A model generated the notes under the pieces. It searched no databases and was not told the origin of the DNA. It saw only the letters and a list, made by a program, of their open reading frames with translations. The position numbers and the translations under genes were made by a program. A DNA stretch of 64,000 bases from Ophelia neglecta (taxonomy: Eukaryota): NCBI GenBank assembly GCA_965285935.1, contig OZ260662.1, positions 2,108,001 through 2,172,000 of the forward strand, given 5' to 3'. This document shows positions 11,940 to 44,900 of the stretch, one piece after another (position 1 is the stretch's first letter; each line of letters starts with the position of its first letter).

Positions 11940-12395
11940 AAAATACTTAGCAACAAGAATAAATAGCAGTGAGCGACATAGGGTACTAGTTACAACTATC
12001 AATAAATAAATAAAAATGCTTCACTAGAAGTTACAATGATGAGTTCAATAATTAATTCTTACACTCAGACTTAAACATCTCCAGACTAGAAATACATTTT
12101 ATATGATTTAGCAAGACATTCCATAGCCTTGCCCCTGCACATGTAAATGTTTTCTGCCCTGAATTGACACTTGCTTTCGGCACAATAAAGTATATTGACT
12201 AGCCCTGGTACAATGATCATGTGTGTCATTACTTTAACAAAATTATTAATATAAGAAGGTGCAAAACCACTCAAACACTTTAAAACAAGACATAGGGTGA
12301 AAAATTCCATTCTCTTCGCAACAGATAACCTGTTTTCCACTGTTTGTTCACAGATCCCGGTTCTACATTCCAGCACCTCTCTATTTCTTACAATA
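11940..12395 (-). mobile_element. 3' fragment of a CR1/L2-group LINE
   Basis: The minus strand reads as a decayed LINE ORF2 C-terminus (KCLSGFAPSYI...; F...GARLWN.L..-type motif). It is homologous in inverted orientation to 49610-49780. Confidence 0.6.
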
Positions 12396-12397
12396 TT

Positions 12398-12990
12398 AAC
12401 ATAAAGTACAGGACCGATGACCTCCTTAAGGCCTGAGTACAATACTAATATAAAGTACAGGACCGATGACCTCCTTAAGGCCTGAGTACAATACTAATAT
12501 AAAGTACAGGACCGATGACCGGCCTTAAGGCCTGAGTACAATACTAATTGAAGTACAGAACCCATGACCTCCTTAAGACCTGAGTACAATACTAACATAA
12601 AGTACAGGACCAATGGCCGGCCTTAAGGCCTGAGTACAAAACTAACATAAAGTACAGGACAAATGGCCGGCCTTAAAACCTGAGTACAATATCAACGTAA
12701 AGTACAGGAGCAATGACCAGCCTTAAAACCTAAGTACAATACTAACATAAATTACATCACCGATGACCTTCTAAATTTTTGACCTTTTTAAGGCCTGAGT
12801 ACAATACTAACGTAAAGTACAGGACCAATGACTAGCCTTAAAACAAGAGTACAATACTACCGTAAAGTACAGGACCGATGACCTCCTTAATGCCTGAGTA
12901 CAATACTTACGTAAAGTACAGGACCGATAACCGGCCTTAAGGTCTGAGTACAATACTAACATAAAGTACAGAACCAATGACCGGCCTTAA
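12398..12990 (+). repeat. 49-bp minisatellite, ~12 copies (AAAGTACAGGACCGATGACCTCCTTAAGGCCTGAGTACAATACTAATAT)
   Basis: Contiguous tandem units with no unique spacers. Confidence 0.92.
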
Positions 12991-13880: not shown

Positions 13881-14420
13881 GACAATTCTTTGCAGATCAC
13901 ATTCTTTTATTGTGCGTTGCTATGGCAATTAAATATATTAGGATGTCTACCAAAAGGTAATCAATTTTTGTTAGGCCTAAAATGCTTTCTCCCTGTCAAT
14001 TTCAGCTCTGTAGCTCCGATACTTTTTTGCGCAATCCTGCTAACGAGCCATATTGCTGTAGAGGAAGTAGTATAGACACTAGGGTGGCACCGTCTATCTC
14101 AAACAAATATTCCAGGCCTATATACTATACCTGTGAAAGATAGCTAGTGTGTACCTAACGGTTGCGCAGCTATTCCTTAAAAAATGGCGGCGCCGGCGGC
14201 GGAGGATATGGCCCTATACATATCCCCAGCTTTTTTTCAAAAAAAGGGTGAGGGACAATAAAGGGGGTTACTTCGAAAAGCTAGGTCTCCTAGAGAAAAA
14301 CGCAACATAACCTGAATAAAACAATACGGACCAATCGAACATGTGCAACCTTGTCGTGATCCTCTCATGTTTCTTCAAAGACAATTCGATAATATAAATC
14401 AAAGTTTCTTCAATCAGATA

Positions 14421-14775
14421 TGTAAATGCCGCAACGCACATTCTAGAGAAGCCTGTTTATTGCCCCAATGGTCTCATACAGAAGCATACTGTTGGCTCCG
14501 TGAAAACTATAAAACAAACATTACATACTACAGCGAAACTCTTATAACAACAAAACATCAGCAAAATCATCCTTTAGCCCAACAATTACTAACCTCATTG
14601 GGCCATCCTAATTCGCTTGACAACAAAAAATTCAATGACAATTGGAGCTTTCCAAAGTTCAATTCCTGCATCCAACATCCAAGACAGTGACATCCGGTGG
14701 GTGCCACGACCAGCCGCCACCAGGTGTCACCGTCGTACAAAGCAATGATAAAGTAGTATTATAGCAGCTGTTACA
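14421..14775 (-). repeat. BEL 3' LTR
   Basis: Direct repeat of 21796-22150, with AATAAA on the minus strand near the U5 end. Confidence 0.97.
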
Positions 14776-14955
14776 CTCCCCCAAAATTAACTCATAAGAT
14801 AATTTTAAGCATTGACAATCCGAAATCAGAACAGAATATTATAAGCACGTAAATCAAACTTATGTTGTTAAACACGTGTTACAAAATTATAGCTTCAATA
14901 TAGTTAACAATATAATGACTACAAACCAACTTATGTTACCAATGCTCCCCCATAG

Positions 14956-17900
14956 CTAAACTGCGGGCTGTGACCCCCCAGATGGAACTTGTTCTACATC
15001 TCCAGCTACTAGGACAATCAACTTATGTATGGGACGCTCCAAGAAAGACTGAGGATTGACACGTCTACCCTTAGAATCCAACATTGGGTCTCCAACAGAT
15101 AGTTTAACACTACGGACCAGCTGGTCTTCACCAACGTGGACCACCGTCACCCTGCCCAACCTCCACAGGTTTCTAGGCAGATTATCATCCTTTATCAAGA
15201 CAACATCACCAGCATGTATATTGCGACGAGGGTGATTCCACTTTTGTCTTGACTGTAAGACTTGCAAATACTCTCGTTTCCAACGAAACCAGAATTCGTT
15301 GAGCAAGTGTTGAACTCTTCTCCATCGTTTACGGGAGTACAAGTCCTCCCTCAGGAACCGGCCAGGAGGGGGGAACAGAACCCTTGTCTTCATAGTAAGT
15401 AAGTTGTTTGGACATAAAGGAAGGAGAGATGGATCACTCAAACTTTCCACAGTAAGTGGACGAGAATTGATAATGTTCATGACCTCGTACAGCAGGGTTC
15501 GCAAAGAATCATCATCTAATTGAGTTCCGTTCTGGGATAAGAGACCAGAGAGTACACTGCGAATGGTCCTTATTTGACGCTCCCAGGTGCCTCCGAAGTG
15601 GCTAGCGAAAGGCACATTAAACTTGAACTCGAACACATCACAACCCTCCTTGAGAAGGTGTTGTCGCACACGATCATAGTCCATCTCATTGAGTGCAGCT
15701 TGCAGCTCATTACTAGCTCCAATGAAATTAGTGCCCTGGTCTGAACGGAGTAGTCTGATTGGGCCTCGAACAGCTAAAAATCTACGCAAGGCGTTTATAA
15801 ATGAATCGGTGCTCAAGGAAACCGCAGTTTCAATATGTACGGCTCTGCACCCCATACAAGTAAATATGCAGCCGTATCTTTTGAGTTCCTTGCGGCCCTC
15901 CCTTATAACAAAGGGGCCAAAGAAATCCACTCCACAGTGTGTGAAGGGTGGCTCTGGATCCGCGCGGTCAGGGGGCAAGTCCGACATCTTTTGTTCGCCA
16001 GTCGGGGCTCGTAGTCGTTTACATAGTACACATCTGGCAATCTCAGCAGAAACAACAGAACTACATCCCACTATCCAGATGCCACTGGATCGTACTTGAT
16101 TTATGGTAATGCCACGTCCTTGATGACCAACATCCTGATGAGCCTGTCTCACAACAAGTGCCGACACGAAGTGCTTCTGCGGCAACAAAATGGGATGCTT
16201 TAGTTCTTTGGCTAAACAAGTCCTACCAAGGCGGCCACCAACACGAAGAATTCCCTCGGAATCCACAAAGGGGTCAAGCCGAAACAGGTTACTTGTTTTT
16301 CTTATTCGATTGTTTCTTTCCTTTGCAGGATCTGTGTCATACTCGTCTGGGCTGATATGATCGAGAACATTCAAAGTCTTGATCTCCTCCTTAAAGCAGT
16401 CACGTTGTACATGTCTGAAGATCAATAGCTCGGCTTTATGAAGTTCATCAACCGTCAATGGTGTAGGTAAGTCTTTGGAGGGGAGACGTTTCCCTCTTAT
16501 GAATACAGCTAGTTTCAATTTGTCCACATATCGCAAACAAAGAGCAAGGGCACGCTTGGTAGAGTGCCAATCTGTAAATCTTCTAAGCCTCTCTATAAAA
16601 GGAGGAAACCGTAGCTGCACCTGAACTGTCATCACTGACATCTTTCTCACCTCAGGATCATCTGGAGAAAGGAATAAACGTTTTTGGGTACTTGGCTTCA
16701 TAATTTCTCTCTCCCACAGAAAGGCTGGTCCGTTCAGCCAACGGGGATTCTGTTTCAGCTCTTGAACACTCAAACCTCTCGAGGCCTCATCAGCAGGGTT
16801 GTCTTCAGTGGGAATGTATTTCCACTGGGACAGTTGTGTACTTTCTCTAATCTCAGAAATTCTGTTTCCCACAAAGGTGTGGAAACGGCGGGATTCGTTT
16901 GCTATATATCCCAAGATAACTTGGCTATCAGTCCAAAAATGTTCCTCAATATCAGGGTATTCCAACTGCCTTCGCAGATAGTTGCTCATTCTGGCAGATA
17001 GGACGGCTGCCGTCAGTTCCAGGCGAGGTATGGTTATAGCCCTCAGAGGTGCCACTCGGCTCTTTCCTATGACAAAGGAGCAGTGGACGTTCCCTTCCTC
17101 ATCTACCATACGCAAGTAACTGCATTGTCCATAACCTGAGTTGCAAGCATCGGAAAAGTGGTGCAGTGATATTTTCTCAGGGCGTCCAAATTCAGCAGGT
17201 TTGTAACATCTGTTGATATTCATTTCAACCAATAACGGAAGACTACTTCGCCACTGCTGCCACCTTGGTCGAAGATAATCTGGCAAAGGGTCATCCCATT
17301 TTAAGGACAATGCACACATCTCCTGGAGTATCTGCTTTCCAGTCATAACCACTGGAGCTATGAAACCAAGAGGATCAAATAACGCACAAATGGTGGCAAG
17401 AACACCTCTTCTGGTAAGTGGCTGGTCTTTCAAGGTAACTCTGAAGTTAAGGGTATCTGACTCGACACACCAGTCCACGCCCAGTGCCCTTTCCATAGGC
17501 AGTTCATCCCTCATCAAATCAAGGCTCATTAATCCTTTTGCACGGTCCTCCACTGGTATGCTTTCTAATACTTCTCTTGAGTTGCAGATAAATTTGTGAA
17601 TGCGCAGACCTCCAGTTTCCCCAAGTTGCTTTATCTCATGGATCAAATTTACAGTCTCTTTCACCGAGGCCAAGGACTTTAACCCATCATCGACGTAAAA
17701 ATTGCGATGAATAAACGCGGGAGCTCCATGTCTCGAGTTTACTCGAAAGTCATCCGCCATCCTACGCAAACCAAAATTGGCACATCCTGGTGAGGATGCA
17801 GCTCCGAAGACATGCACTCGCATACGGTAATCAACTGGCTCAGACGTGAAGTCTCCATCTTTAAACCAAAGAAAACGCAAATAGTTCCGGTGAGCAGGAT

Positions 17901-18438
17901 CGACAAGGAACTGATAAAACATCCTCTCTGCATCGCACGAGAAAGCAATTCTTTCTTGGCGGAATCTCAGTAATACACCTAATAAGGGATTGGTCAAATC
18001 TGGTCCTTGCAAAAGGTGGGAATTCAGGCATTCTCCTTTGTAAGAAACGCTGTAATCAAAGACGACCCGCAACTTGTCTCTGGTACTGGTTTTATACACT
18101 CCATGGTGGGGAATGTACCACACTTGTCCATGGATGGCGTTGTCAGTGCTATAAACCCGTTCGCAGTGATTTTCATCAAATAATCCCTGCATAAAATTCA
18201 TGTAGTCTACTCTGTATTGTGGGTCCTTTAACAAACGATTCTGCAGGGATCTGAACCTGGAATGGGCCTGGTCACGATTGTTTGGGAGCTCCGGTGGGTT
18301 CTCCTCTTTAAATGGCAGGGGCAACATATAATGTCCACCTTCTGTCTTAGTTATTCCCTTGTTCATTTTCGACAGGAAACTTTTGTCTTCTAGTGATAAG
18401 GGAATCCCGGGGTCTTCTTTCGTTGAAGTCCTGTTCAA
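14956..18438 (-). CDS. pol: BEL Pol: reverse transcriptase, RNase H (Pao peptidase A17 region), integrase
   Basis: RT YVDD; HHFSDA, TIPRLEL and WTDS RNase H motifs; integrase H-H-C-C, VDFFGP, SDQGTNF, GGTWER; C-terminal W.LGRV domain. Confidence 0.96.
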   Translation of the reverse strand: MNRTSTKEDPGIPLSLEDKSFLSKMNKGITKTEGGHYMLPLPFKEENPPELPNNRDQAHSRFRSLQNRLLKDPQYRVDYMNFMQGLFDENHCERVYSTDNAIHGQVWYIPHHGVYKTSTRDKLRVVFDYSVSYKGECLNSHLLQGPDLTNPLLGVLLRFRQERIAFSCDAERMFYQFLVDPAHRNYLRFLWFKDGDFTSEPVDYRMRVHVFGAASSPGCANFGLRRMADDFRVNSRHGAPAFIHRNFYVDDGLKSLASVKETVNLIHEIKQLGETGGLRIHKFICNSREVLESIPVEDRAKGLMSLDLMRDELPMERALGVDWCVESDTLNFRVTLKDQPLTRRGVLATICALFDPLGFIAPVVMTGKQILQEMCALSLKWDDPLPDYLRPRWQQWRSSLPLLVEMNINRCYKPAEFGRPEKISLHHFSDACNSGYGQCSYLRMVDEEGNVHCSFVIGKSRVAPLRAITIPRLELTAAVLSARMSNYLRRQLEYPDIEEHFWTDSQVILGYIANESRRFHTFVGNRISEIRESTQLSQWKYIPTEDNPADEASRGLSVQELKQNPRWLNGPAFLWEREIMKPSTQKRLFLSPDDPEVRKMSVMTVQVQLRFPPFIERLRRFTDWHSTKRALALCLRYVDKLKLAVFIRGKRLPSKDLPTPLTVDELHKAELLIFRHVQRDCFKEEIKTLNVLDHISPDEYDTDPAKERNNRIRKTSNLFRLDPFVDSEGILRVGGRLGRTCLAKELKHPILLPQKHFVSALVVRQAHQDVGHQGRGITINQVRSSGIWIVGCSSVVSAEIARCVLCKRLRAPTGEQKMSDLPPDRADPEPPFTHCGVDFFGPFVIREGRKELKRYGCIFTCMGCRAVHIETAVSLSTDSFINALRRFLAVRGPIRLLRSDQGTNFIGASNELQAALNEMDYDRVRQHLLKEGCDVFEFKFNVPFASHFGGTWERQIRTIRSVLSGLLSQNGTQLDDDSLRTLLYEVMNIINSRPLTVESLSDPSLLPLCPNNLLTMKTRVLFPPPGRFLREDLYSRKRWRRVQHLLNEFWFRWKREYLQVLQSRQKWNHPRRNIHAGDVVLIKDDNLPRNLWRLGRVTVVHVGEDQLVRSVKLSVGDPMLDSKGRRVNPQSFLERPIHKLIVLVAGDVEQVPSGGSQPAV

Positions 18439-19561
18439 ACATTCTCAAAATTTCAATGGGGGATATAACCTTTTTAACCTTAGTTTGGCATGCAAGAAGC
18501 ACCTTGTTTGAAAGGCACTGATCAGCATCACTTGTGGCCAACGAGTCTGGCACATTACACACTAACACTCTGTGACTCAATCCAATAGGATCGCAATTGA
18601 CAATGTCTTCATCATTCGCATCAATAACTCCAACAACTCCCCATCCCAGATCAGTTTTTTGTGCAAATGGCCCATCGCCTTCGTGTGGTATCACATCTCT
18701 GGGCGTCAATGCACGAGGACAGTTATAGCCTATTAGTAATCCTACTTCACAATCTTGTAGTGGGTACAAACAGTCTTCAATTTTCTGAAGGTGTGGCCAT
18801 GATTTGATCATGTCTGGTGTTGGCACGTGAGATTTGTCTGCAGGCATAATGCTGCGGGTGTACGTAGGTGGAAGCTGAATAGAAATGTCCGAATCCAGTC
18901 CCCTAACCAGTAAACCTTGAACTAGCCTGCTTTCTATTGGTTGCTTACTAGCTAACATGGTAGAGAGGAGAAGCTGCACATCAGGCCCCTGAACACCCAG
19001 CGCATCGCAAGTATCATCTCTAATGAATGTGGTATCGGATTGAGTGTCCAATAAAGCGTAAACTTTCCGCTCCATTTCAGGTCTATCTACATGGGAAATC
19101 CAAACTGGGACTATCATAGATGCTTGTCCATGCCCTAACATATGTCCCAAATGCGCAGTGCTAACAGTAGCCTGTGTCGTTGCAGCAGGTAAACGCAGTT
19201 GACCTTGTCTCAGGTCAGGTCTCATTTCTTCCTTCCCTACATTTTGTTCAGGCAAGATTTTAGTCAAAGGTCGATCCTTCCATACGTCACCATGCAGGGC
19301 GGTTGGGTGGCGTTTGGAACACACAGCACAGGTGAGGCGATCCTTGCAGTCCTTTGATCTATGACTAGGTTTTAGGCATCCAAAACATAGACGTTTTTCG
19401 AATATGAAAGTCCTTCTCTCCGTCAAATCTTTGGCCAAGAAGGCTTGACAATCATTCAGGCAATGTTTCTTCTCGCATAGCAGACAGACCACCCGAGGCT
19501 GGGCAGAAGATTCTTTTGCCTTGGTATTATGTACATCAAGAGATCTTCTGTCAATTCTTTG
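18347..19561 (-). CDS. BEL Gag zinc knuckles plus aspartic protease; frameshift near 18420
   Basis: Three Cys-His motifs (CLLCEKKHCLNDC, CFGCLKPSHRSKDC, CAVCSKRHPTALH) and protease LLDTQS. Confidence 0.9.
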   Translation of the reverse strand, partial: QRIDRRSLDVHNTKAKESSAQPRVVCLLCEKKHCLNDCQAFLAKDLTERRTFIFEKRLCFGCLKPSHRSKDCKDRLTCAVCSKRHPTALHGDVWKDRPLTKILPEQNVGKEEMRPDLRQGQLRLPAATTQATVSTAHLGHMLGHGQASMIVPVWISHVDRPEMERKVYALLDTQSDTTFIRDDTCDALGVQGPDVQLLLSTMLASKQPIESRLVQGLLVRGLDSDISIQLPPTYTRSIMPADKSHVPTPDMIKSWPHLQKIEDCLYPLQDCEVGLLIGYNCPRALTPRDVIPHEGDGPFAQKTDLGWGVVGVIDANDEDIVNCDPIGLSHRVLVCNVPDSLATSDADQCLSNKVLLACQTKVKKVISPIEILRMFEQDFNERRPRDSLITRRQKFPVENEQGNN

Positions 19562-21064
19562 TCATTGTCCTCTCGGCATATCTGTGGTGGGAACTTTATC
19601 ATGCCCAACCTTTCCCTTTATTGACTGAAGGGACGCCACAGGATCGCAGGCTATATCAGCTTCTTGTTCTAGGAAGCTCACAAATTCCCGAAAGGGCGGA
19701 AACACTTTCCTTTCGTTTTTATACAAGTGCACCTTCCTATTCCATCTGACCACTAACCAGTCCGGAAGCTTGGTAAGAATTTTCCTGTTCTCAGTCTCGT
19801 CATTCATTATTGAAAGGGAAGGTATGCTACTCATGGCTCCTTCACACTGCAGGAGAAAGTCACTCAGGCGTCGCAGTTCATCACCATCTCTGGGAGGAAC
19901 CTTCTTCCATTCATCAATCCTTTGTCTGAAAGCTCCGGCAACAGCAAATGGATCGCCAAAACGCTTCTCAAGCAATTCCACAGCCCTGGTGTAGGCTTCG
20001 GTATTATTCAGATAGAAGTACCCTTCAACTGCAGACCTAGCAGGGCCAGCAAGATATTTTTTCAAATAGTACAATCGCTCCGCAGGGGGTACACCTCTCT
20101 GGCTCACCAACACCTCAAATGCATTCTTCCATTCAGGATAGCGTAAAGGATTTCCAGAGAACACTCCCGGCTCAGGTGATGGCAGGCGGTTTAACAGTAG
20201 CTGTTGGCTCAGGGACTTGGTCAGTTCAATCACTGGATCTTGTATAGTAGGCTCAATCTCATTAACAACCTCATGATCAGAGGCTGTCTCAGGTTCACTA
20301 GACTCAGGCAAGGGGGAAACGACGGGTAAAGCAGCAGTACTATGAGGTGGGGACTTGTCGCCTTTCGCAGATACCGCATTCGCAAATTCAGACTCCTCGT
20401 CCTCTACCTCCGCAATTGCATCAACCCTGGCTTCTGCCATTTTTAGGTCTCTCAAAATTATCAACCTGTCCAAATCGGCCCTTTTTTTAGCCTCTAAATC
20501 AACAAATTTTAATTTGGCCTTTAGCATAGCAGCATTTGCCGCTGCCTCCTTACGCTTAGATTGGCCAGACGTAACCGACGAAGTTCTAGAAGACCTGCTC
20601 TTGATGGATACAGTGTCTATTGACCTCAAATACTCTGAAATGTCCTTTACCAGCTGCAAATTAAATCCTTCTACTTCATCAAACTTATCATGAACGTCTG
20701 ATGTAGGAGGCAAAAGAGTGCTCACTCTGTAGTACGCATCAGTTACATCTCTAGACTTCACATGCAACGTTTCTCGTCTCTGTTTAATTATTGCTACATC
20801 GATTTCGTCGGACAACAAAGTTTGCATTTCAATATAAACCTTTCTCCAAGCAGACACAGCAGCCCTAAACACCAACTGACCCCTATCACACGCATATTGC
20901 CGACCCTTCTCAGTTAAAACACGCTCAGTTTCGGCCCTGGTCCCAACCCCAGAGGCCCTTACCTCCCCAGGGAGATCAAATAAAGGTTGAGTATCCGCAA
21001 TAATATCATCAGGTTTCCCGGCCTGCACACCAGGGGGAGCATTGCTTTCATCGACATTCGACAT
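19562..21064 (-). CDS. gag: BEL Gag N-terminal part (DUF1759-like), ending at an in-frame TGA
   Basis: LPSPEPGVFSGNPLRYPEWKNAF...ERLYYLKKYL motif typical of BEL Gag. The reading frame continues after the TGA into the 19492 ORF (69 nt, same frame). Confidence 0.9.
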   Translation of the reverse strand: MSNVDESNAPPGVQAGKPDDIIADTQPLFDLPGEVRASGVGTRAETERVLTEKGRQYACDRGQLVFRAAVSAWRKVYIEMQTLLSDEIDVAIIKQRRETLHVKSRDVTDAYYRVSTLLPPTSDVHDKFDEVEGFNLQLVKDISEYLRSIDTVSIKSRSSRTSSVTSGQSKRKEAAANAAMLKAKLKFVDLEAKKRADLDRLIILRDLKMAEARVDAIAEVEDEESEFANAVSAKGDKSPPHSTAALPVVSPLPESSEPETASDHEVVNEIEPTIQDPVIELTKSLSQQLLLNRLPSPEPGVFSGNPLRYPEWKNAFEVLVSQRGVPPAERLYYLKKYLAGPARSAVEGYFYLNNTEAYTRAVELLEKRFGDPFAVAGAFRQRIDEWKKVPPRDGDELRRLSDFLLQCEGAMSSIPSLSIMNDETENRKILTKLPDWLVVRWNRKVHLYKNERKVFPPFREFVSFLEQEADIACDPVASLQSIKGKVGHDKVPTTDMPRGQ

Positions 21065-21795
21065 ATTAAATATTCAGCATTGGCCAATTAGTGTGAAAAA
21101 TGTGAAAAATAGGTACAGGCATAGAACATCAAACTATTCATAAATTCACCAAAGGTCATCAAAGCATACCAAGGCACCGCAAAAGAAATTCAATAACACT
21201 CCTTAAATTCTACAAAAAATACAATACAATCTAATATGAGTGGATATTGTAACAAACTATTAGTTTCAAGTGCAGAACCAAATATTGACCACACTACATA
21301 AACATATATATCAAGATTTACATAATACAACAAGTATTCCACAAATTGTACGCAAAGACCAAGATTTGTACAGTAACCACGAGTACTTTCAGTTACATAA
21401 ATGTCAATGGAAAAAGAACATATTGAACATGAATGAAATATTATTGGTCGACCAGGTCCTCAAACGACGATGAGATCTTCTGCACTTGATGACAAGGACG
21501 AATCACCCACGAGATCTGTGGTACGGCGATTTACACAGTACAAAGTATCTATTGTGTAAGCAGTTCCAAAAATCGTACTTGTGATTAATGTTTATTGACC
21601 AACCAGGTCCAATAAATGATTGTTGACAACGGGAATTGAATGTGCTCTACCTGCGTCAATCCACACAAATAAGTTTGGAATGTTCTGTCTAGACGAACTC
21701 CACCAGAGACGCAGTCGTAGATAAAATCCAGAATGTTCCAAAGACGATATGTACGGCCAGGCTCCTCTAAGCTGGAATCCACCTTGAGTTTTCAC

Positions 21796-22150
21796 TGTAA
21801 ATGCCGCAACGCACATTCTAGAGAAGCCTGTTTATTGCCCCAATGGTCTCATACAGAAGCATACTGTTGGCTCCGTGAAAACTATAAAACAAACATTACA
21901 TACTACAGCGAAACTCTTATAACAACAAAACATCAGCAAAATCATCCTTTAGCCCAACAATTACTAACCTCATTGGGCCATCCTAATTCGCTTGACAACA
22001 AAAAATTCAATGACAATTGGAGCTTTCCAAAGTTCAATTCCTGCATCCAACATCCAAGACAGTGACATCCGGTGGGTGCCACGACCAGCCGCCACCAGGT
22101 GTCACCGTCGTACAAAGCAATGATAAAGTAGTATTATAGCAGCTGTTACA
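21796..22150 (-). repeat. BEL 5' LTR
   Basis: Direct repeat of 14421-14775. Confidence 0.97.
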
Positions 22151-22855
22151 AGATACATTGAGCTTTGCTCAACATAGTAGAAAAATATTTCTCTCAGCTG
22201 ACATATAAGCATTTGAAATGTCCACATTGACAAAGGTGCTTTCGGCTGTTTATACTATGGTTTCTTTCGGACCATAAACAACTGAGATATAAGCATTCAA
22301 AAAATTCAAAACGGATCTGTAAGTCTGTGACCTACATATTTCATGTACTTCAACCTGTATATTCCTATCAGCAGTAGTCTTGATTAGCTACATGTATCTT
22401 GTATATATTTTAAACAGTTTAAATATGAGGTCTTAATATTGTCAAAAATGGCGCTGTTACCTACATACTAAACATAAGTCAACCTTCATTATTTCGATTA
22501 ACTGTAATCTAGACTGGCTATTGCGTGGTTTCTTTCGTAAATCCTTATTCATTTTAGATCGTAAATAACTGTACTATGGTCTCTTTCAGTTTGATATTGG
22601 ACAATAAATAACTTAGATATAAGCATTTGAAAACATCAAAATTACGCTGCTATTGATTGGTTAGGAGCCCGTCTTGTGAGGGTATTTCTCACTTGCCACA
22701 CAGATATACAGTGAAATAGCATTTAAACGAGTGGCTTTAAGAAAACCATATCGCCGAGGCATTTGGAAATAGAGGCCATTTAAATGATAGAAGTGTGCCC
22801 GAGTGTGTCAAGCGGTCTAAAATGTGGTAAACGGTGCCACTGTGTCAAATAGGTT

Positions 22856-24313: not shown

Positions 24314-26900
24314 TATGTCTGGTGAGGAGGGTAAAGACGATGTTGTGAGAGGTGCGGCTCCGAATCCAATGATAATGAATCCTGGTGAGGATAAAACCGT
24401 TTCTATGGAAGAATTTGTGAATTAACAGGAAAAATTACTTCAATTGTCCACTTCGTTTAAGGATTATAGAGATTTGGTAGAATCACGCAGTAAGCCCACC
24501 GGTTTGTCACCATATCAGACTAATGATCCTGATGTTAAACCTAAGGTTCAATTTACACACGTGTCTTCACCTGTCGTTCAAAATTCAAACACTCTTGAAA
24601 CCGGTCACGTTGCTGGTTCGAATTCGCCTCCCTCGCAATCAACTCTGCCTCGTACATTTGTTGTAGCAAGGGAGAAGAAATTTCCCAAGTTACCAGGTAG
24701 ACCAGTCAAAAATGATGACCCTGATGTTATTGACTGGGTACAAGATATCAAGTACTACTTGGATAACCAGAACATGACTATGTGTGAAAAGAAAGCTTTC
24801 ATTCTGGAACATTTGAAATGAAATGCTAAACAAGAAATAAAATACAGCTTTGACTCCTTTGCTTCTGATTCAGAGATGATTATAGTTATTAAGGAAGTAT
24901 TCGGAGATTGCTATTCGGTTTCTGCACTTTGGCACAGGTTTTATACTAGAAACCAGAAAAAGGATGAATCTTTTCACACTTACGGTATTTCTCTCATGGA
25001 GATTAGGAATAAAATTAATTCACTGAATGAAATTTCTGATGCTGAAAAGAATCAGGCATTGAAAGAGAAGTTTGCCGAAGGAGTTAGAGATGAACATATA
25101 CGCAGAGATTTGCGCAAGCTCAAGGAAGAGCTACCCCTTCTATCATTCTTTGAGTATAGGTATAGAGTCATCAAATGGACTGCTGATTGTAATGGGCCAG
25201 CCCCTACTAGTGGAACCAAAACATCATCTGTTCAATCCTCTGTTATTTCGAGTAACATTGACCCGATTGCCCTTCAGAGAGGGGAATCCACAAAGACAAC
25301 TATGAACCAAACGTCAAGAAAAACCATGGTAGGTCCTCTAATGCTACGAAGGGGTCCCCAAACTAGATTCCTCCCATAGCAAAGGCCACCCATGGGAGGA
25401 AAGTAAGTCGGGCCTTGAAACCAATGGTTTATATGGAAATGTTTATGGAAGCTGTCCAATAGAAACTGTTACTTTAGCAGGTGTCGAAAGTAAGTGTCTC
25501 CTGGACACTGTCCAGAGCTCAAGTCTCCCTCATAAAATTGTCATATTTTAATAAACATTTGGAGAGTAGGGAGATTAATACTGATTTTGCAAAATTCCAA
25601 CTCACCGCAGCTAATGGTCTCGACATTCCATACGTGGGTATTACTACACTTGATCTTACAATTTGCAAAGTTAATTGTTCTGATATGTTTTTTTTCATTG
25701 AGGACGATACAGGTTGCCCCCAGCGGCTTGTCAATGTCACTATAGGCTGCAATATTTTTAACCAGATTACCAACAAATGTTCCAATTTGTCATTGTTGTA
25801 ACAAGTAACAGAACAAGTTTGGTACGGGTAGGGACAATACCGTTACGGATTCCTGCCAATTCTATGAAAGTCGTAAATGGCCGGACAAAGTGTTTTCCTA
25901 AAGACAAGAAAATACAAGGCCTAGTACAAGCACCAAATGGGAATAACGCTTGTCATCCTTGTTATAGATTCGGTTTCAAGTATTGAAAAGCAAATGCTAG
26001 CGTAAGGGTGATAAACCTCGGTGAACAGGATATTTGGTTGCCAGCACGCTCAGTACTTGGCACTTTGTATACTGACGCTGAGGTGTCCAACCCTGACTAT
26101 GTTGATGTGACAGTTCAGGACGAGGCTATAGTGGTGTCTGTAAAGAGAAACACTTTTTCTGACCAGGATTTGAGTGTAACGAGATACAGGCGGACCAGGT
26201 GAATACACTCATTGACACTGTGTGTGATACTACCCGTATACCTATCTTAGCAACCAAAGGGGGCTCTGCTAGGCAAACCCCTACCTCTCCTCTGAGTTGG
26301 GCAAGTCATTATTCCCAAGATGAATTGAAAAACTCGCAGAGAACTGACCCTTGTACCTCCCGTGTTTTAGCTCTATTGGCTGACAAACATAAGCCAACAC
26401 GTCGTCAACTTTCCAGGGATAATTGGGAAGTCCGTCGTCTGTGCGGCAAATGAGACAATTTCAAACTGTACAACAATTTGCTTTACAGACTTATCCAGTC
26501 AAATGGTCATGATATTTGGCAGCTTGTCATCCCCCGAGCTTTGCGTGACCACATGCTAACCCTCTGCCATGACCAGGCGGGGCATCAGCGTGTAAAACCG
26601 TTAGAGATTTTGGCCATGGATTTTACATTGATCGACAAGGCTTCAAACGGCCTAGAAAACGTGTTGGTTTTAACAGACGTTTTCACTAAACTCACCAAAG
26701 CAATTCCATGCAAAGATCAAAAAGCTACCACTGTTGCAAAGCTATTGGTCAAAGAATGGTTCCAACAATTCGGCGTCCCCGTCCGCCTACATTCGGACCA
26801 GGGACGAAGTTTCGAAGGCAAAACTGGTTGGACCATATCAATTAATCTTGTACATACCTTTGTCGTTCCCGGGTACACCTTACTTTCATTTCATAATTAA
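24314..26900 (+). pseudogene. Decayed Gypsy gag / protease / partial integrase, copy 1 (no RT seen)
   Basis: Gag fragments with stops (FYTRNQKKDESF major-homology-like), frameshifted protease CLLDT...LTAANG, integrase HDQAGHQ, ILAMDF, LHSDQGRSFE. No YxDD found. Confidence 0.85.
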
Positions 26901-28540: not shown

Positions 28541-31127
28541 TATGTCTGGTGAGGAGGGTAAAGACGATGTTGTGAGAGGTGCGGCTCCGAATCCAATGAT
28601 AATGAATCCTGGTGAGGATAAAACCGTTTCTATGGAAGAATTTGTGAATTAACAGGAAAAATTACTTCAATTGTCCACTTCGTTTAAGGATTATAGAGAT
28701 TTGGTAGAATCACGCAGTAAGCCCACCGGTTTGTCACCATATCAGACTAATGATCCTGATGTTAAACCTAAGGTTCAATTTACACACGTGTCTTCACCTG
28801 TCGTTCAAAATTCAAACACTCTTGAAACCGGTCACGTTGCTGGTTCGAATTCGCCTCCCTCGCAATCAACTCTGCCTCGTACATTTGTTGTAGCAAGGGA
28901 GAAGAAATTTCCCAAGTTACCAGGTAGACCAGTCAAAAATGATGACCCTGATGTTATTGACTGGGTACAAGATATCAAGTACTACTTGGATAACCAGAAC
29001 ATGACTATGTGTGAAAAGAAAGCTTTCATTCTGGAACATTTGAAATGAAATGCTAAACAAGAAATAAAATACAGCTTTGACTCCTTTGCTTCTGATTCAG
29101 AGATGATTATAGTTATTAAGGAAGTATTCGGAGATTGCTATTCGGTTTCTGCACTTTGGCACAGGTTTTATACTAGAAACCAGAAAAAGGATGAATCTTT
29201 TCACACTTACGGTATTTCTCTCATGGAGATTAGGAATAAAATTAATTCACTGAATGAAATTTCTGATGCTGAAAAGAATCAGGCATTGAAAGAGAAGTTT
29301 GCCGAAGGAGTTAGAGATGAACATATACGCAGAGATTTGCGCAAGCTCAAGGAAGAGCTACCCCTTCTATCATTCTTTGAGTATAGGTATAGAGTCATCA
29401 AATGGACTGCTGATTGTAATGGGCCAGCCCCTACTAGTGGAACCAAAACATCATCTGTTCAATCCTCTGTTATTTCGAGTAACATTGACCCGATTGCCCT
29501 TCAGAGAGGGGAATCCACAAAGACAACTATGAACCAAACGTCAAGAAAAACCATGGTAGGTCCTCTAATGCTACGAAGGGGTCCCCAAACTAGATTCCTC
29601 CCATAGCAAAGGCCACCCATGGGAGGAAAGTAAGTCGGGCCTTGAAACCAATGGTTTATATGGAAATGTTTATGGAAGCTGTCCAATAGAAACTGTTACT
29701 TTAGCAGGTGTCGAAAGTAAGTGTCTCCTGGACACTGTCCAGAGCTCAAGTCTCCCTCATAAAATTGTCATATTTTAATAAACATTTTGAGAGTAGGGAG
29801 ATTAATACTGATTTTGCAAAATTCCAACTCACCGCAGCTAATGGTCTCGACATTCCATACGTGGGTATTACTACACTTGATCTTACAATTTGCAAAGTTA
29901 ATTGTTCTGATATGTTTTTTTTCATTGAGGACGATACAGGTTGCCCCCAGCGGCTTGTCAATGTCACTATAGGCTGCAATATTTTTAACCAGATTACCAA
30001 CAAATGTTCCAATTTGTCATTGTTGTAACAAGTAACAGAACAAGTTTGGTACGGGTAGGGACAATACCGTTACGGATTCCTGCCAATTCTATGAAAGTCG
30101 TAAATGGCCGGACAAAGTGTTTTCCTAAAGACAAGAAAATACAAGGCCTAGTACAAGCACCAAATGGGAATAACGCTTGTCATCCTTGTTATAGATTCGG
30201 TTTCAAGTATTGAAAAGCAAATGCTAGCGTAAGGGTGATAAACCTCGGTGAACAGGATATTTGGTTGCCAGCACGCTCAGTACTTGGCACTTTGTATACT
30301 GACGCTGAGGTGTCCAACCCTGACTATGTTGATGTGACAGTTCAGGACGAGGCTATAGTGGTGTCTGTAAAGAGAAACACTTTTTCTGACCAGGATTTGA
30401 GTGTAACGAGATACAGGCGGACCAGGTGAATACACTCATTGACACTGTGTGTGATACTACCCGTATACCTATCTTAGCAACCAAAGGGGGCTCTGCTAGG
30501 CAAACCCCTACCTCTCCTCTGAGTTGGGCAAGTCATTATTCCCAAGATGAATTGAAAAACTCGCAGAGAACTGACCCTTGTACCTCCCGTGTTTTAGCTC
30601 TATTGGCTGACAAACATAAGCCAACACGTCGTCAACTTTCCAGGGATAATTGGGAAGTCCGTCGTCTGTGCGGCAAATGAGACAATTTCAAACTGTACAA
30701 CAATTTGCTTTACAGACTTATCCAGTCAAATGGTCATGATATTTGGCAGCTTGTCATCCCCCGAGCTTTGCGTGACCACATGCTAACCCTCTGCCATGAC
30801 CAGGCGGGGCATCAGCGTGTAAAACCGTTAGAGATTTTGGCCATGGATTTTACATTGATCGACAAGGCTTCAAACGGCCTAGAAAACGTGTTGGTTTTAA
30901 CAGACGTTTTCACTAAACTCACCAAAGCAATTCCATGCAAAGATCAAAAAGCTACCACTGTTGCAAAGCTATTGGTCAAAGAATGGTTCCAACAATTCGG
31001 CGTCCCCGTCCGCCTACATTCGGACCAGGGACGAAGTTTCGAAGGCAAAACTGGTTGGACCATATCAATTAATCTTGTACATACCTTTGTCGTTCCCGGG
31101 TACACCTTACTTTCATTTCATAATTAA
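28541..31127 (+). pseudogene. Decayed Gypsy gag / protease / partial integrase, copy 2
   Basis: Same ORF set shifted by 4227 bp. One substitution noticed (25561 G vs 29788 T). Confidence 0.85.
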
Positions 31128-34800: not shown

Positions 34801-36918
34801 CTCCCATCTATCCACTGGGATTACATAAGCATTTTTGCTAGGCATGGCACTGGTTAATTTAGGACTACAGGTCCAGCTGTAGTGGGTAGGCTCTGGTGGC
34901 TAATAGTTTGAATTAGCAGGTGTAAGCACTACATATTTAATAGCTCTGCCTCCTACTTAATTATTTATGTTTTACAGGTATAAGCTTATTGTGTTTACTT
35001 ATGATGAATGCCAAAGGGAGTTAATAAGAGGGGAATGGGTGAGGGAAAGGGGCTTTGAGACTTATCGACCAAATTTCAGCAAACATGTTTTTGCTTTACT
35101 CCTCATTTCATTCGTTTCCAGTATTTTGAGCAAATAAATACATCTCTTTGGTGGGAGGGGGTTCCTACTCTACCTTTGACTTTGCCAAAAGTGACTATGC
35201 GACAGACATGTTTACTATTCCTTTTAATTGTTTCTAAACGCCTTGTTATAGCTGTGCTAACAGAGACATGATTTGTGGTTGTTGTTATTTGAAAATCAAC
35301 AGCATATTCTGTGTCCAAGTTGGCTTTATTTAAGAAAACTTATCAACTTGGATGACAGTGTATATTATATCACCACATAAGATAAAGGCTGGGCGCACGT
35401 AGGAGTATGTTAACTTCATTCAATCTTATTATAAAGGCAACTACTTTGCACAATTTAATATTCATATTCCGCTAAGTATCTCTTCGCATGAATACACCAA
35501 AGTTTTATATACTGTGTGTAAGCTTATTAGCAACTAAACAAAATTGTTACCCATGTACCTTTCAATGTAAATATATTTCCTTATTTTAGTTTGAATATGA
35601 AAAGCCAGTTCTAAGACACTCTAAAGAATTGTTAACTTATTACATATTATTGGTAATTTTTTGCCCATTTTTTTGTTTCTTTTTTTTTGTCATTAAAAGT
35701 TTGTTTTAAATTCAAATGGAATATCTCAATAGTTCGTCTTATTTATTACAATAGTTTTCATTTATTGCTTTTTATTGGTTTATTTTCCTCCTCTAATATT
35801 TTGTTGTTCTGTTTTTATACTTTTATTTACGGATATTGATAGCGCTGTTTTTACTCTTGTTGCTTCTGTCACCGGAAAGTGGTGGAGATATATGTGCTGG
35901 TACTAAATATTCTGAACCTAATAGGCAATTTTCATTATGATAACGAAAGTGCTAATTAATATGCATTTCACAATTTGCTATCAGTTTGACCCGAAAAGTA
36001 AAGGATGTTTGCTGGTCAGTGGTCTGGTGTCAAGGAAATGATTTAATCACAAATTATACCGGTGGATATTAATTTAATGTTTAATGACAGTTCTTTGTTG
36101 GTGTTGCAAAATTCTTAGGTGTATTTAGGTCATAAAATTGAATCTAATAATAAAGTTTAGACTTATAAGGTACCACTAAATACTGAGTCCATGAATTCGT
36201 TCAAATATGCATGGGTGGTTAGTTTAAGTGACTTATCAGTTAGGATCAGGAATAGTTGATTTGCAGATATTCCAAACATTTTGGCAACATTTTTATGTCA
36301 GATAGAAAAGCTAAATGTTAAAGGAATTTAAGCTGCCATGTAATATTGTCAGCAGTATTCAGTTATAATTTGTACTACAAATAAGAAACTCTAATATGGA
36401 TGCCATTGGATACCTAGGATGCTGTGGTGTTGTGATGGCGCTTTACTTTATAGCCAGTGACTGCAATCGGTCTTTAGTTTATTTACAGGTCACTTCTATG
36501 GTGTATCATTGTGAACCAAATAACATGTTGATTATTAATGCATTAAAAGGTTTGACATTGAAGTTTACTTAATGGATCTTGGGTAAAATTGTCTTTTCAT
36601 TTGTCCAGGGTCAATATAAGTCACCAGTCAGATTTCTCATTGTATTTCAAAATCTGAATGATGCTTCTCCGTGTTTATGTTAAACATGATACTAGAATGG
36701 CTAGGTTTGATCATTTAAGAGTTTTCAATCTGCCAAAATTAAAGGTAGATATAATGTATATTTAGTCATGCCAACTGGTGGACATTATTCAGGTCTCCAC
36801 AATAAAAGCAATAATACAGTAGTAGTAGAATTCTTTTTTGAAAAAAATAATTAATAATTAAGACACCCTATATCAGAGTTTTTCTTAATGTTTACATTTC
36901 AAGGGATTTTTATTATTC

Positions 36919-37672
36919 AGACAGCCAGGTGTATGATACAGACAGCCAGGTGTATTATACAGACAGTCAGGTGTATGATAAAGACAGCCAGGTGTATGAT
37001 ACGGACAGCCAGGTTTATGATACAGACAGCCAGGTGTATGATACAGACAGCCAGGTGTATGATACAGACAGCCAGATGTATGATACAGACAGCCAGGTGT
37101 ATGATACAGACAGCCAGGTGTATGATACAGACAGCCAGGTGTATGATACAGACAGCCAGGTGTATGATACAGACAGCCAGGTGTATGATACAGACAGCCA
37201 GGTGTATGATACAGACAGCCAGGTGTATGATACAGACAGTCAGGTGTATGATAAAGACAGCCAGGTGTATGATACAGACAGCCAGGTGTATGATACAGAC
37301 AGCCAGGTGTAATATACAGACAGCCAGGTGTATGATACAGACAGCCAGGTGTATGATACAGACAGCCAGGTGTATGATACAGACAGCCAGGTGTATGATA
37401 CAGACAGCCAGGTGTATGATACAGACATCCAGGTGTATGATACAGACAGCCAGGTGTATGATACAGACAGCCAGGTGTAATATACAGACAGCCAGGTGTA
37501 ATATACAGACAGCCAGGTGTATGATACAGACAGCCAGGTGTATGATACAGACAGCCAGGTGTATGATACAGACAGCCAGGTGTATGATACAGACAGCCAG
37601 GTGTATGATACAGACATCCAGGTGTATGATACAGACAGCCAGGTGTATGATACAGACAGCCAGGGGTATGAC
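36919..37672 (+). repeat. 21-bp minisatellite, ~36 copies (ATACAGACAGCCAGGTGTATG)
   Basis: Highly homogeneous tandem array. It produces the spurious MIQTARC/YDTDSQV ORFs. Confidence 0.97.
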
Positions 37673-39802
37673 ACTTCTGGCTCAGTTGAAATGCACAAAA
37701 AAGACTGCTGTGAGTGTTCAGATGAATTTCTCACAGTCCACTTTATTTAGTATCGATTGTACTGTTTCTTTCAACTCGACCAAGGCGTGTTGTTGTATGA
37801 CCTCGCTGCTTCCTCCTTAGATTATGTGTACGTTGCAAGGCCATGTTTGTACCTACGGGCGTGCCTCTAAATATAATGTGATGCATTAAAAACAAAGAAT
37901 TAATTTTATTAGAAAATTACAATTTATTCATTTTCACAGAAAGTTTACATGAATTCTGGATAACAATCAAGGGTAGCTGTAGCAATGAAATACTTTGACA
38001 TAAATCGCCATTTCAAATATATATTTATTTCACATGCTGTTGATTTGAGACATCTGTCAAATACTCAAACTACGCATGCCATTAAAACTTACAGCCTAGT
38101 TATATTATAAAGCTTTTCCTTTAAAAAACAAATATTTAATCACTCATCAGCCATATATACTGTTATGAATTATAGTTGATGCAATTATTCACAGTTAATC
38201 ATAGTCGCAATAAAGTGGTATGCTTAAAGTGGTATGCTGATAATCAGGCAAATATAATTGTATACAATTAAATCAGGTGACAATTTGATATAATTTACGA
38301 ATGGAGCATAACTGAACACCGGCACGCCAGTCCGTACGATTTATACGGAATGAACAACCGCTTTATTATATGTATGTGTATTAAGCGAGATTCTCAGGCG
38401 TGACAACACTTAATTGTATAAAAGCTACTATGATAACGCCAGCAGTTAAGTACATATTATTTCTGTCTTTTCTACTTCTGAGTTTAAAACATACAGCCAC
38501 ACGTTTTTGAGCTTTTGGTTGCAAAATCACAAAAGACGTTGTAGCAAATTTTAATATCAATATAAATTGGTTAGACACAAACAAATCAAATGCTTCATTA
38601 AAAACAACCCAGGGTATTTTCTTTTAAACAATATAATATGGAACAATGCATCAATCAATCAACTGGTCCTATATACACACACATGCTTACACTGCAATAA
38701 GAAAACTGCACGTTACAAATATGCTCAGAAAAAATTCTTTTATAAAGGCATTTGTCATTGTTTGTACAAAAAAATAAGTAAAACATTGATAAGGTGTGTG
38801 ATTTAGAAATAACCACGAATTACGCCATAATTTTACTGTATGCACTAAAATAAAGTGTATGGAATACGTTATTTGATGAAAGTCTGAAAATGAACTCTAT
38901 TCTCTTTTTTATCTTTATGCTACTAGAGTAGTATATAATCCCTATGGAGGGGCCTATTGATGACGGGTCCTTCTGCTGACAGACAATAAGTATAGTTTGG
39001 TTTTGGTCTTATCATGGGAAAGGCCATCAATCGGTCTGACAGTTACCAACAACATGGAAACTATAGAAAAACAACATGGCTTCATCAGCAGGTTATACAT
39101 ATAAACAGATTGATTTTGTACTGTTCACTTGAGGAAATCAATACTCGTGACTCAGGTCCAATATCCCAGGCCAACAACATATGTATACGTGGAGCTATAA
39201 TGCCATTTGAGTAAAATAGCCTTCATTGAGTGAGCAGCGCTTGCGGCGTTCAGTATTTGATGTTTTGGCATTAGCAATAAATGAAAAACAGAAATATTGC
39301 GTTTCTTACTGAATTTTACCATCTTTTTGTACTGCACTATTGAAAGAATATAATATGACTCCCATTACTATACCTCAGTTTATATTTATTCAGATATTAT
39401 TATATAAATAATGATATCTGATAAATAAATATCAATGTGATTAAGTGGGCAATCGTACAGATTGAATATCTTTACAATGACAAATGATAAGGTTAATGAT
39501 AACATATTTATACCTTAGATATTAAGGAAAATAAATGTTGAATAATATTTACATTCCAGAAAAATTTAACGAATAACACCAATTTTACTTGATTTGTTAA
39601 ATACTTCAATTCTTGATATCCTAAACAATATGTACGAATGGTTTCTTACTGGTATCATTATTTCAGCTATAACTTTGATTCAAAAAATATTTTGGAAAGT
39701 GACAGAAGACAGATGATTCATTCCTATACGAATGTTTTTAGTACCATTCAAGTGAGATGTAGTGACCAAAGAGAGATTACCAGATAAAAGATTAGCGCCG
39801 GT

Positions 39803-41968: not shown

Positions 41969-44900
41969 TGTTGTGTCCCGCTATTAAAAGGAGAAGGGGA
42001 TGGCCTAGATGATTCACTAGAACACGAGACTGAGTAAACACGAGTTTTATTCATGGCACCGGAAGCACTGGTAGCACTGGTACATTTACATTCGCTAGGT
42101 GACAGCACTAGACTGACCACCACCACATCTCCCCAACTTAGTAAGGAACTACAGTTCCTGTAAATAAAACAGGCTATCTTAATTTCTTTTTTTTTCTTTT
42201 TTTTTTTAAGAATACAATCTTTCACACATACAATCAAATGATCAAATAAACTGTAATACCTTAACAATACTGTTGTTGTTGTTGTTATTAAACTAGCAAA
42301 AAAAACTGTATGTGTCACTTGAAACAATGATGTGTATGGTATGATGAGTTACATTTTAATGCAATATCTTGCCATATACTAGTAATCAAAAACTTCAAAC
42401 TACTTAATACTAGACTGTTAAGCAGTTAAGCTAATTCTCCAAACTTGCAGTCCTACTAAATTTAACCTTTAATACAACAAACAAAATCTTTAGTCCAAGC
42501 AGGTTTTTCCCTGACTCTGCAGGACCTTCTTAATTCAACTTCAGGAGTATTGGCTGCTAACTCATTGGTACTGTTTTCTACACAGGGGGAGGCATTACTT
42601 GTGTGTACATTAGTCTCTGCACTAACAATGGGGGAACTGGGTTCTCCCAAATTAACTGGGACCTGGGCCTCATCTGGAGTGACAGGGCTAGAACACTCCA
42701 GCTGCTCATCCTGGCTGTGATCTTTTTACATGCTCAGTTGACCTAAATTTTCTAGTACCATTTGAGTCTTCTAAAACTACACCACCATTTTCCAGTTTGA
42801 CAACTTTGTAGGGTTCTGATTCATATTGCTTGGTCTTTAGTTTACATGAAGTATCACGCTCCCTGAGCTTACTTTGCCAGTCAATTTCAGTAAATTTAGT
42901 ACTACCAATTTGTAATTTAGGCAACTTGTCCCTGAGCTCTCTACCCATCAATGCTTGAGCAGGCGAAACACTTGTAACAGTGTGGGGAGTGTTTCTATAC
43001 TGAAATAAGAAATTTTCTACCTCCCTTTTCCAATCTTTCTTTTCAACTTTGGCAATTCTAATTATTTTCAACAAAGTTTCATTAAACCTCTCCACACACC
43101 CATTGCTTTGTGGCCAATATGGGATGCTACACTTGTGCTGTATCCCCAAGTATTCTAGAAAAGCTTCAAATTTTTCTGAATTGAAAGGGGGGCCGTTGTC
43201 ACTTCTAACAGTGAATGGAATACCATGTGTTTGAAATACAGTCTCCAGACATCTATTCACATGTTCAGCATCGGTTTTTCTAAGCAATATCACTTCAGGC
43301 CAACGTGAATAATAATCAGTGATCACTAATAAATGTTGACCACCAGAGACTTCAAGCAAATCTGTGGCTATGTCACACCATGGACCCTCAGGTAAAACAG
43401 TAGACGTCAAAGGCTCAGGTACAGGTCTTGCACCAACTAACTGGCACGGGTAACAGCTCTGATTCAGTTTCTCAGTTTCTCGATCCATACTGGGCCACCA
43501 AACTTTACCCCTAAGGCGGGACTTTGTCCTCACAATTCCTTGATGACCCTCATGAGCCAGCTTAAGTACATGTGACTGCAAGCTCTGGGGGATAACCAGC
43601 CTATTGCCCCGTAAAACGATATGTCCATACAGCCACAGCTCATCTTTAAGAAACCAGAATGGAGTACTTTTTAGAGTAGCCCAATTACCAGACAATATGC
43701 ACTTTTCAACTTTCTGCAAGACAGGGTCTTTTGCAGTTTCTGTTTCTATTAATTTGGGTGAAAGTGCTGATGGGACAGTCTCTATAACAGTACTGTAAGC
43801 AAAATCTTCAGTATTCTGACACTTGTCAGGGTCTTTGCTATCAATTGGTAGTCTACTCAGTATGTCAGCATAATTTGATGTGCCACTGATATGTACAATT
43901 GTATAGCCAAAATCCTGTAAAAACAGTAGCCAGCGCTCTACCCTAGCCGATGGTGGCTTTGAATTTGGGCTCAGCACCTTTAACAGTGGCTTATGATCAG
44001 TTCAGATCTGGAAGTTTGTTCCTATCAGGTATAGTCTAAATTTATCACATGCCCACTTCACTGCCAAACATTCCCGCTCAAATTGTGAATATCTTTGTTC
44101 TGTGGGGGTTAATTTGCGACTGGCATAGTGAACAGGTCTGTATTGGCCATCTTCTTGTAATTGTTCTAATATTGCACCAACACCCACAGGGGAACCATCT
44201 GTGGTCACCCTAGTTTTTGCATCAGGCCTATAGTAGGCCATGACAGGAGCGGTTGTCAACTTTTCTTTGAGCTCACAAAATGCTTCCTCATGTTCAGAGG
44301 TCCATTTCCAATCTACTGAAGCTCCTGTCAGATTCCACAGTGAGCTGGTTATGATTGCAAAATTCTCAACAAATTTTGAGCAAAATTGTGCTAAACCCAA
44401 AAAACTGCGCAATTCAGCTTTGCATGTTGGCCTTGGAGCCTCTGTGACAGCCTTAATTTTACTTTCGGAAATTTGTACCCCTTGTGCTGTCATAACATGA
44501 CCCATGAAAACCATCTTGTCTCCAATTTCACACTTGGAATAATTCAGGGTCAACCCATGTTCTTTGAGACGGAGTACTACTATCTCAACTCTCTCATACA
44601 ACTGCTTATAGTTTTCTGCTACTACTCGTATGTCGTCATGGATGTTGTGCACGCCAGGACACCCCTTTAATATCTGACTTATAATATTTTGAAACTTTTC
44701 TGTTGCCATGTTTACACCAAACACCAGCCTTTTGTAGCGATACAATGAATCTGGACCTGCAAATGTTGTGATGTCCCTACTACTTTCATCTAGCTCTATT
44801 TGGTGAAAAGCCATACTCATGTCTAGTTTACAGAATACCTTTGCACCACTTATTTCCTGCAAAGTTTCATCTAAGGTTGGAACGGGATGTTTCTCCCTTA

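Follow-up and report, generated by a model that had tools for sequence, protein, structure and literature searches.

The question raised by this locus is how a BEL/Pao retrotransposon with no tRNA primer-binding site (PBS) after its 5′ LTR begins reverse transcription, a step that has so far been little studied in this superfamily. The answer that we favour, and to which we give a probability of about 0.75, is that minus-strand synthesis is primed by the element's own RNA in a Tf1-like manner, with a primer that is assembled by splicing; within this reading the transcription start site (TSS) and the RNase H cut are inferred. The window, by which we mean the whole stretch of DNA that was analysed, comprises 64,000 nucleotides of Ophelia neglecta contig OZ260662.1, and coordinates given without a contig label are positions within it.

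The element is a full-length LTR retrotransposon on the minus strand (22150-14421), flanked by a 5-bp target-site duplication (TSD), TATCT, at 22151..22155 on its 5′ side and 14416..14420 on its 3′ side. The 5′ LTR (21796..22150) and 3′ LTR (14421..14775) are each 355 nt long, end in TGT...ACA and are 100% identical (automated repeat finding gave just 300 nt for each), and the polypurine tract (PPT) GGGGGAG (14776..14782) lies directly before the 3′ LTR. The gag ORF (19562..21064, minus strand) carries DUF1759 (E-value 8e-12) and stops at an in-frame TGA (19564-19562), beyond which the same frame continues without a Pfam match (18347..19561). The pol frame (14956..18444, minus strand), which contains Peptidase_A17/Pao (7e-46) and DUF5641 (1.5e-27), is shifted relative to gag, with the change of frame falling within 18444-18350. 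In pol the element shares 50-55% identity with BEL/Pao polyproteins from echinoderms, molluscs, cnidarians and fish. Pfam domains, pol identity and the LTR, TSD and PPT criteria are all met, and the element belongs to BEL/Pao (Belpaoviridae); membership of the Tf1/sushi group by phylogeny is not met, the pol profile being of the Pao type and not RVT_1/RT_RNaseH. The window copy is a recent insertion. It has the in-frame TGA after gag and the frame change before pol despite its identical LTRs, and these could represent either recoding or damage; with this stop and shift the copy may be non-autonomous. In the related contig L002 gag and pol likewise lie in overlapping frames.

Several other features of the window are recorded here. 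A Ty3/gypsy element (42706-46608, minus strand) has an 868-aa ORF with zf-CCHC, RVT_1 and RT_RNaseH and a second ORF of 423 aa with Integrase_H2C2 and rve. Two 167-aa ORFs on the plus strand (24876-25379 and 29103-29606), 4227 nt apart, have identical weak scores to PNMA, a gag-like family, and may be the product of a direct duplication of about 4.2 kb. A tandem array built of 36 copies of a 21-nt unit, with 95% matches (36911-37671), lies within a 310-aa ORF (36888-37820), and a second array with a period of about 50 nt (12389-12990), its unit containing the palindrome GGCCTTAAGGCC, is found just past the 3′ flank of the BEL/Pao element.

The first bases after the 5′ LTR are GTGAAAACTCAAGG (21795-21782, minus strand), and the 14 nt next to the LTR are free of TGG, the nearest starting 15 nt on at 21781-21779. 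The 64-kb window contains no tRNA genes and no Rfam families. The PBS-equivalent, GTGAAAACTCA (21785..21795), abuts the LTR end, and the LTR itself contains, at 21883-21875 (LTR positions 268-276), the 9-nt segment AGTTTTCAC, which is the exact complement of 21795-21787. Overlapping this segment is a candidate splice acceptor, tgtttgttttatAG (ttgttttatAG, last base 21882), at the end of a pyrimidine-rich tract plus AG spanning 21896-21882, and upstream of it lies a candidate donor, GTTAGT (21968-21963), in the context GAG/GTTAGT. Between them they define a proposed LTR intron of 87 nt (21882..21968, minus strand). Its motifs meet the criteria of a U2-type intron (GT..AG ends, donor consensus, pyrimidine tract, pyrimidine at -3), and splicing of the window copy is inferred from these motifs alone, without RNA data. 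Once this intron is removed, the proposed end of exon 1, TGAG (21969..21972), pairs with positions 8-11 of the PBS-equivalent and the proposed start of exon 2, TTTTCAC (21875..21881), with positions 1-7, giving an 11-nt match of the joined sequence to 21795-21785; the 3′ end of TTTTCAC would provide the primer 3′-OH. The initial annotation had claimed that no tRNA PBS or TGG directly follows the 5′ LTR, that the LTR holds a 9-nt complement of the first bases after it, that a donor at 21968 and the acceptor AG bound an 87-nt intron, and that the spliced junction lengthens the match to 11 nt, and all of these held, the coordinates without exception.

In the window copy the gain from splicing is only 2 bp (9 to 11 nt). 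Of 20000 shuffles of the LTR alone that preserved its dinucleotides, 33 produced a match of 9 nt or more beginning at the base next to the LTR, and 14 produced a match of 11 nt or more split by GT..AG. Two further signals are placed relative to the intron. An AATAAA poly(A) signal (21831..21836, minus strand) lies 45 nt past the acceptor, and the start of exon 2 is therefore placed inside R, while the sole TATA-like motif upstream of the donor, TATAAT at 22133..22138 (LTR positions 13-18, minus strand), is a possible promoter element judged from sequence alone.

Relatives were sought with a gag search and a pol search, which matched thousands of BEL/Pao polyproteins, and the pol alignment was used to fetch 80 metagenome contigs. 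A scan that was blind to the donor, looking for CA followed by a 7- or 8-mer with its reverse complement upstream, found LTR:PBS complementarity to be recurrent, with sequences that differ between elements and that always lie beside a pyrimidine tract and an AG. L002, in which both LTRs are present, has AGTTTTAC in the LTR against GTAAAACT after the LTR, with GGAG/GTACGT upstream. About 30 related elements with the same layout were identified in the genomes of sea urchin, starfish, clam and fish and in unassigned metagenome contigs, and the splice-site pattern of the window LTR is common to 28 relatives, whose LTRs have upstream donors of the types GTAAGT, GTATGT, GTACGT and GTGAGT. Consensus bases are frequent at the donor (+3 A in 23/29, +5 G in 25/29, +6 T in 20/29) and at the acceptor (-3 pyrimidine in 29/29, -5 T in 28/29); the donor filter demanded four matches out of six, which accounts for part of the donor enrichment. 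In every element with a readable LTR, the bases before the donor resume the complementarity precisely where the segment after the AG ends.

In the 29 distinct elements splicing brings the duplex to 10-17 nt, with one case of 35 nt besides, and the mode is 11 nt (14 of the 29). Without splicing the match is 5-11 nt; of the 28 elements having an unspliced value, 27 stay at 5-9 nt, and the lone contiguous match of 11 nt belongs to an LTR unit of uncertain affiliation in L001. The window copy, at 9 nt, does not meet the criterion of about 10-11 contiguous nucleotides for self-priming of the Tf1/sushi type. In the 29-element summary the share of exon 2 is 5-9 nt and that of exon 1 is 3-10 nt, and the LTR introns range from 87 to 1321 nt. 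The lengthening is clearest where the AG is unpaired, as in L055 (7 to 17 nt), L057 (9 to 13 nt) and L071 (7 to 15 nt); in four families a 5-nt unspliced match, the exon 2 share, becomes 11 nt on splicing. As the total is constant and the split point variable, we argue that the joined sequence is the functional unit.

Two loci among the relatives deserve separate mention. L070 (3594-3608) and L071 (553-567) are near-identical copies that are one PBS base apart, and the change in L070 shortens the spliced match from 15 to 12 nt; this is a natural variant that bears on the rewriting of the PBS considered below. The 35-nt case is a 692-nt LTR-like unit in L001 (12416-13142), in which the 35 nt after the unit match, without a single mispair, the junction that its own splicing would form (26 nt from exon 1, 9 nt from exon 2, intron of 97 nt). 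No long ORF or coding region lies downstream of it, it may be a non-autonomous or decayed element, and it is not used as support.

The initial annotation had proposed covariation between LTR and PBS in relatives as a check, and this was carried out and found the pairing to be both conserved and covarying. Among 28 elements there are 22 distinct PBS 10-mers, each matching its own junction, and eight of the ten positions vary. For 18 elements chosen without reference to donor sequence, the continuations of the PBS were permuted 20000 times: the summed extension observed was 74, against a permuted mean of 44 and maximum of 71 (p <= 5e-5). A splice-aware scan gave 32 sense against 6 antisense matches of at least 11 nt, and 5 against 0 of at least 13 nt. 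The pattern was also met by elements fetched after it had been defined, since all six of those with a readable LTR and PBS show the split duplex: Strongylocentrotus purpuratus (14 nt), P. miniata (12 nt, LTRs 100% identical), R. philippinarum (11 nt), the fish P. dabryanus (11 nt, donor ambiguous) and the Logan contigs L086 (15 nt) and L087 (10 nt). Acanthaster L083 and Actinia L093 were left out of this count owing to runs of N at the LTR or PBS. Of the two inferences in the initial annotation, self-priming in place of a tRNA is supported by the relatives, as is completion of the primer duplex by splicing of an LTR intron, with the reservation already made for the window copy.

The simplest alternative is plain self-priming of the Tf1 type without splicing, in which the TSS would lie at or near the A of the pyrimidine-AG, acting as an initiator-like element, the donor would fall in untranscribed U3 and the first 8-9 nt of the RNA would pair with the PBS. 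In its favour, the window has a TATAAG inside the proposed intron (21921-21916), 38 nt upstream of the acceptor AG, and in 17 of 28 elements there is an unspliced match of 8-9 nt that starts exactly at the AG. Against it, four families match over only 5 nt when unspliced, the AG is unpaired in several elements (L055, L057 and L070/71), and both groups attain 11-17 nt only across the junction; the ends of exon 1 covary with the PBS, and no consistent TATA was found about 30 nt upstream of the AG across families. An initiator or TSS at the AG was indeed suspected first, from the TATAAG at -38 and the AATAAA at +45, and was dropped on the split duplexes of the relatives. We regard this alternative as very unlikely. 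TATA positions relative to the donor are likewise inconsistent among families.

Precise removal of LTR introns of this kind is indicated for two related families. Their predicted junctions are present as contiguous sequence in other contigs: the LTR of L025 has lost the intron exactly at GT..AG, and the RT tree nests L025 within an intron-bearing clade, while the 3′ LTR of L015 is without a 536-nt intron that is present in the 5′ LTR region in its family. Intron-less LTRs arise only from spliced RNA, whether the contigs are themselves RNA-derived or represent reverse-transcribed DNA, and precise removal of the LTR intron is thus shown in these two related families. They prove splicing of the LTR unit and do not show which copy, 5′ or 3′, was spliced, so that the presence of exon 1 at the 5′ end of the RNA is left unproven. 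Logan contigs L086-L091 gave no transcript evidence, being either unspliced or ending short of the acceptor. Of 25 elements, 19 have an AATAAA past the acceptor and before the LTR ends, which puts the beginning of exon 2 within R. The contig L007 opens (1-10) no more than one base away from where exon 2 is predicted to start, and the donor is present in its 3′ LTR; this is what would be expected if the assembly graph forks at a splice junction, which remains a possibility only.

A second alternative accepts the composite pairing and denies that the primer is the spliced 5′ leader of the same RNA; instead the intron might be looped out of an unspliced RNA, the primer might act in trans, or it might come from a spliced 3′ LTR copy on the same or a co-packaged RNA. 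It can be said for this view that the 3′ LTR copy in every genomic RNA has exon 1, intron and exon 2 whatever the TSS, that the intron-less LTR copies show the 3′ copy to be spliceable, and that the unspliced fold retains the helix in the 35-nt case. Folding predictions weigh against the looped-out option. In predicted minimum free energy (MFE) folds the primer:PBS helix is kept in 13 of 25 spliced leaders (all 11 pairs in that of the window) and in just 1 of 25 unspliced leaders, the exception being that same 35-nt case. Moreover, a looped-out intron would not need canonical splice signals at the edges of the duplex, yet these are conserved. Priming from the 3′ copy would, by inference, sever R from U3 and require a second RNA for strand transfer. 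On balance we consider this alternative unlikely.

A third possibility is that the primer is a cellular RNA (a tRNA, a tRNA half or another RNA) and that the LTR:PBS pairing serves packaging, dimerisation or circularisation, or is due to chance. The host tRNA set was not compared, which leaves this view some room. However, TGG is missing within 14 nt of the LTR, the 22 PBS 10-mers follow the LTRs of their own elements, and the duplex invariably runs up to the base that adjoins the LTR, which is the required site of a primer 3′ end. Because the PBS varies and tracks its own LTR, a shared cellular primer is excluded, and chance is excluded by the LTR shuffles together with the PBS permutation test. 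We rate this possibility, too, as very unlikely.

On an RT tree of 84 rows with a midpoint root, split elements occur on both sides of the root and in all major clades except one of 24 rows. No split primer was found in that clade, where most members are undetermined, and rescanning the undetermined loci yielded only noise, both when G:U pairs were allowed and when the CA rule was dropped (18 sense against 27 antisense matches). Within the same clade, L032 (1-175) and L036 (1-225) have an unsplit 9-nt LTR:PBS match placed 2-4 nt after the LTR, which covaries between the two, and gag begins within 20 nt. In L081 (614-690), also of this clade, an inverted repeat of 17 nt lies upstream of pol at a distance of about 3.1 kb.

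Under the splice-assembled self-primer model, then, transcription of the 5′ LTR would start upstream of the donor, a step that is inferred and for which there are no TSS data. The LTR-internal GT..AG intron would next be removed, as is shown with precision for two related families and is indicated by motifs alone in the window copy. The junction would pair over about 11 bp with the sequence directly after the LTR, exon 1 supplying its final 3-10 nt and exon 2 its initial 5-9 nt; the basis for this step is sequence complementarity and covariation. By analogy with Tf1, RNase H would cut after the ...AC that is paired to the GT beside the LTR end, and reverse transcriptase would extend the resulting 3′-OH through U5 and R before jumping to the 3′ R, which we infer to lie between the acceptor and the poly(A) signal. 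Since plus-strand strong-stop synthesis copies the primer, each cycle would renew the PBS from the spliced primer, and such rewriting would explain the perfect and element-specific complementarity across the junction.

Several points count against this model, among them the small gain in the window copy, its disrupted coding frames and the inconsistent TATA positions already described. Intron-bearing LTRs persist in very young copies, whose LTRs are 100% identical, and templates must therefore keep the 3′ intron and yet lose the 5′ one, an asymmetry that is unexplained; nonsense-mediated decay of RNAs spliced in their 3′ UTR might conceivably account for retention of the 3′ intron, an idea that is untested. 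A long exon 1 might also leave the primer with an unpaired 5′ tail that plus-strand strong-stop synthesis could copy, a difficulty that is absent in Tf1. Finally, no element has RNA evidence for its 5′ end and the TSS is unmapped. In a bolder form of the model, splicing would act as a switch that licenses reverse transcription in an old and widely distributed BEL/Pao lineage: unless its 5′ LTR had been spliced, an RNA could not fold the helix and become a template, unspliced RNAs would do other jobs, and renewal of the PBS from the spliced primer in each cycle would tie replication to the host spliceosome. We think this form less likely than not.

If the model is true, host RNA processing and the replication of retroelements would be linked in a new way, through a primer that comes into being only once the pre-mRNA has been spliced, and self-priming would reach a third superfamily of LTR retrotransposons. 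It would also explain why standard detectors of PBS and of self-primers fail on these BEL/Pao elements, and it supplies an annotation rule for active copies, namely that joining the end of exon 1 to the beginning of exon 2 gives the PBS in reverse complement. The puzzle that it raises is what shields the intron of the 3′ LTR in the course of replication. In the searchable full-text literature we found neither self-priming nor an LTR intron reported for BEL/Pao, and the two main open-access surveys of BEL/Pao never mention PBS, tRNA or priming; an older description in a subscription journal is not excluded. Within those bounds the splice-assembled self-primer is probably undescribed, and we judge it to be a new form of self-priming.

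How this form relates to known systems can be set out from the nearest to the most distant. In Tf1 it is the opening 11 bases of the RNA that anneal to the PBS, and the RNase H cut falls between bases 11 and 12 (PMC7175516). Like Tf1 and Tf2 of S. pombe and the Tf1/sushi elements of Ty3/gypsy, the elements described here lack a tRNA PBS and have a duplex of about 11 nt between their own RNA and the sequence adjacent to the LTR, the modal duplex of 11 nt being equal in length to the Tf1 self-primer. They differ from the Tf1/sushi group in superfamily and in having the complement split in the DNA, within the LTR, by a spliceosomal-type intron of 87-1321 nt, and from Tf1 in that the pairing segment probably does not form the very 5′ end of the RNA. 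In plants, self-priming has been predicted from LTR:PBS complementarity alone for the Tcn1 (gypsy) and TAR (copia; Houba, Osr-1) lineages, with a detection rule of at least 10 contiguous bp located 0-5 bp after the LTR (PMC6317226). Our inference is likewise drawn from LTR:PBS complementarity; unlike those contiguous matches, the split primers of BEL/Pao, with 5-9 contiguous nt, would escape that rule, the 11-nt match in L001 excepted. With tRNA-primed elements, including the copia-type elements that use a half-tRNA, they share a primer-binding position that directly abuts the 5′ LTR, and they depart from them in that this position is without TGG, variable and element-specific. HTLV-1 and foamy viruses have a splice donor inside R of the LTR; their acceptor lies far downstream in the body of the genome, the products are subgenomic mRNAs and priming is by tRNA. 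In BEL/Pao, by contrast, both splice sites lie within the LTR and the junction between them would itself be the primer.
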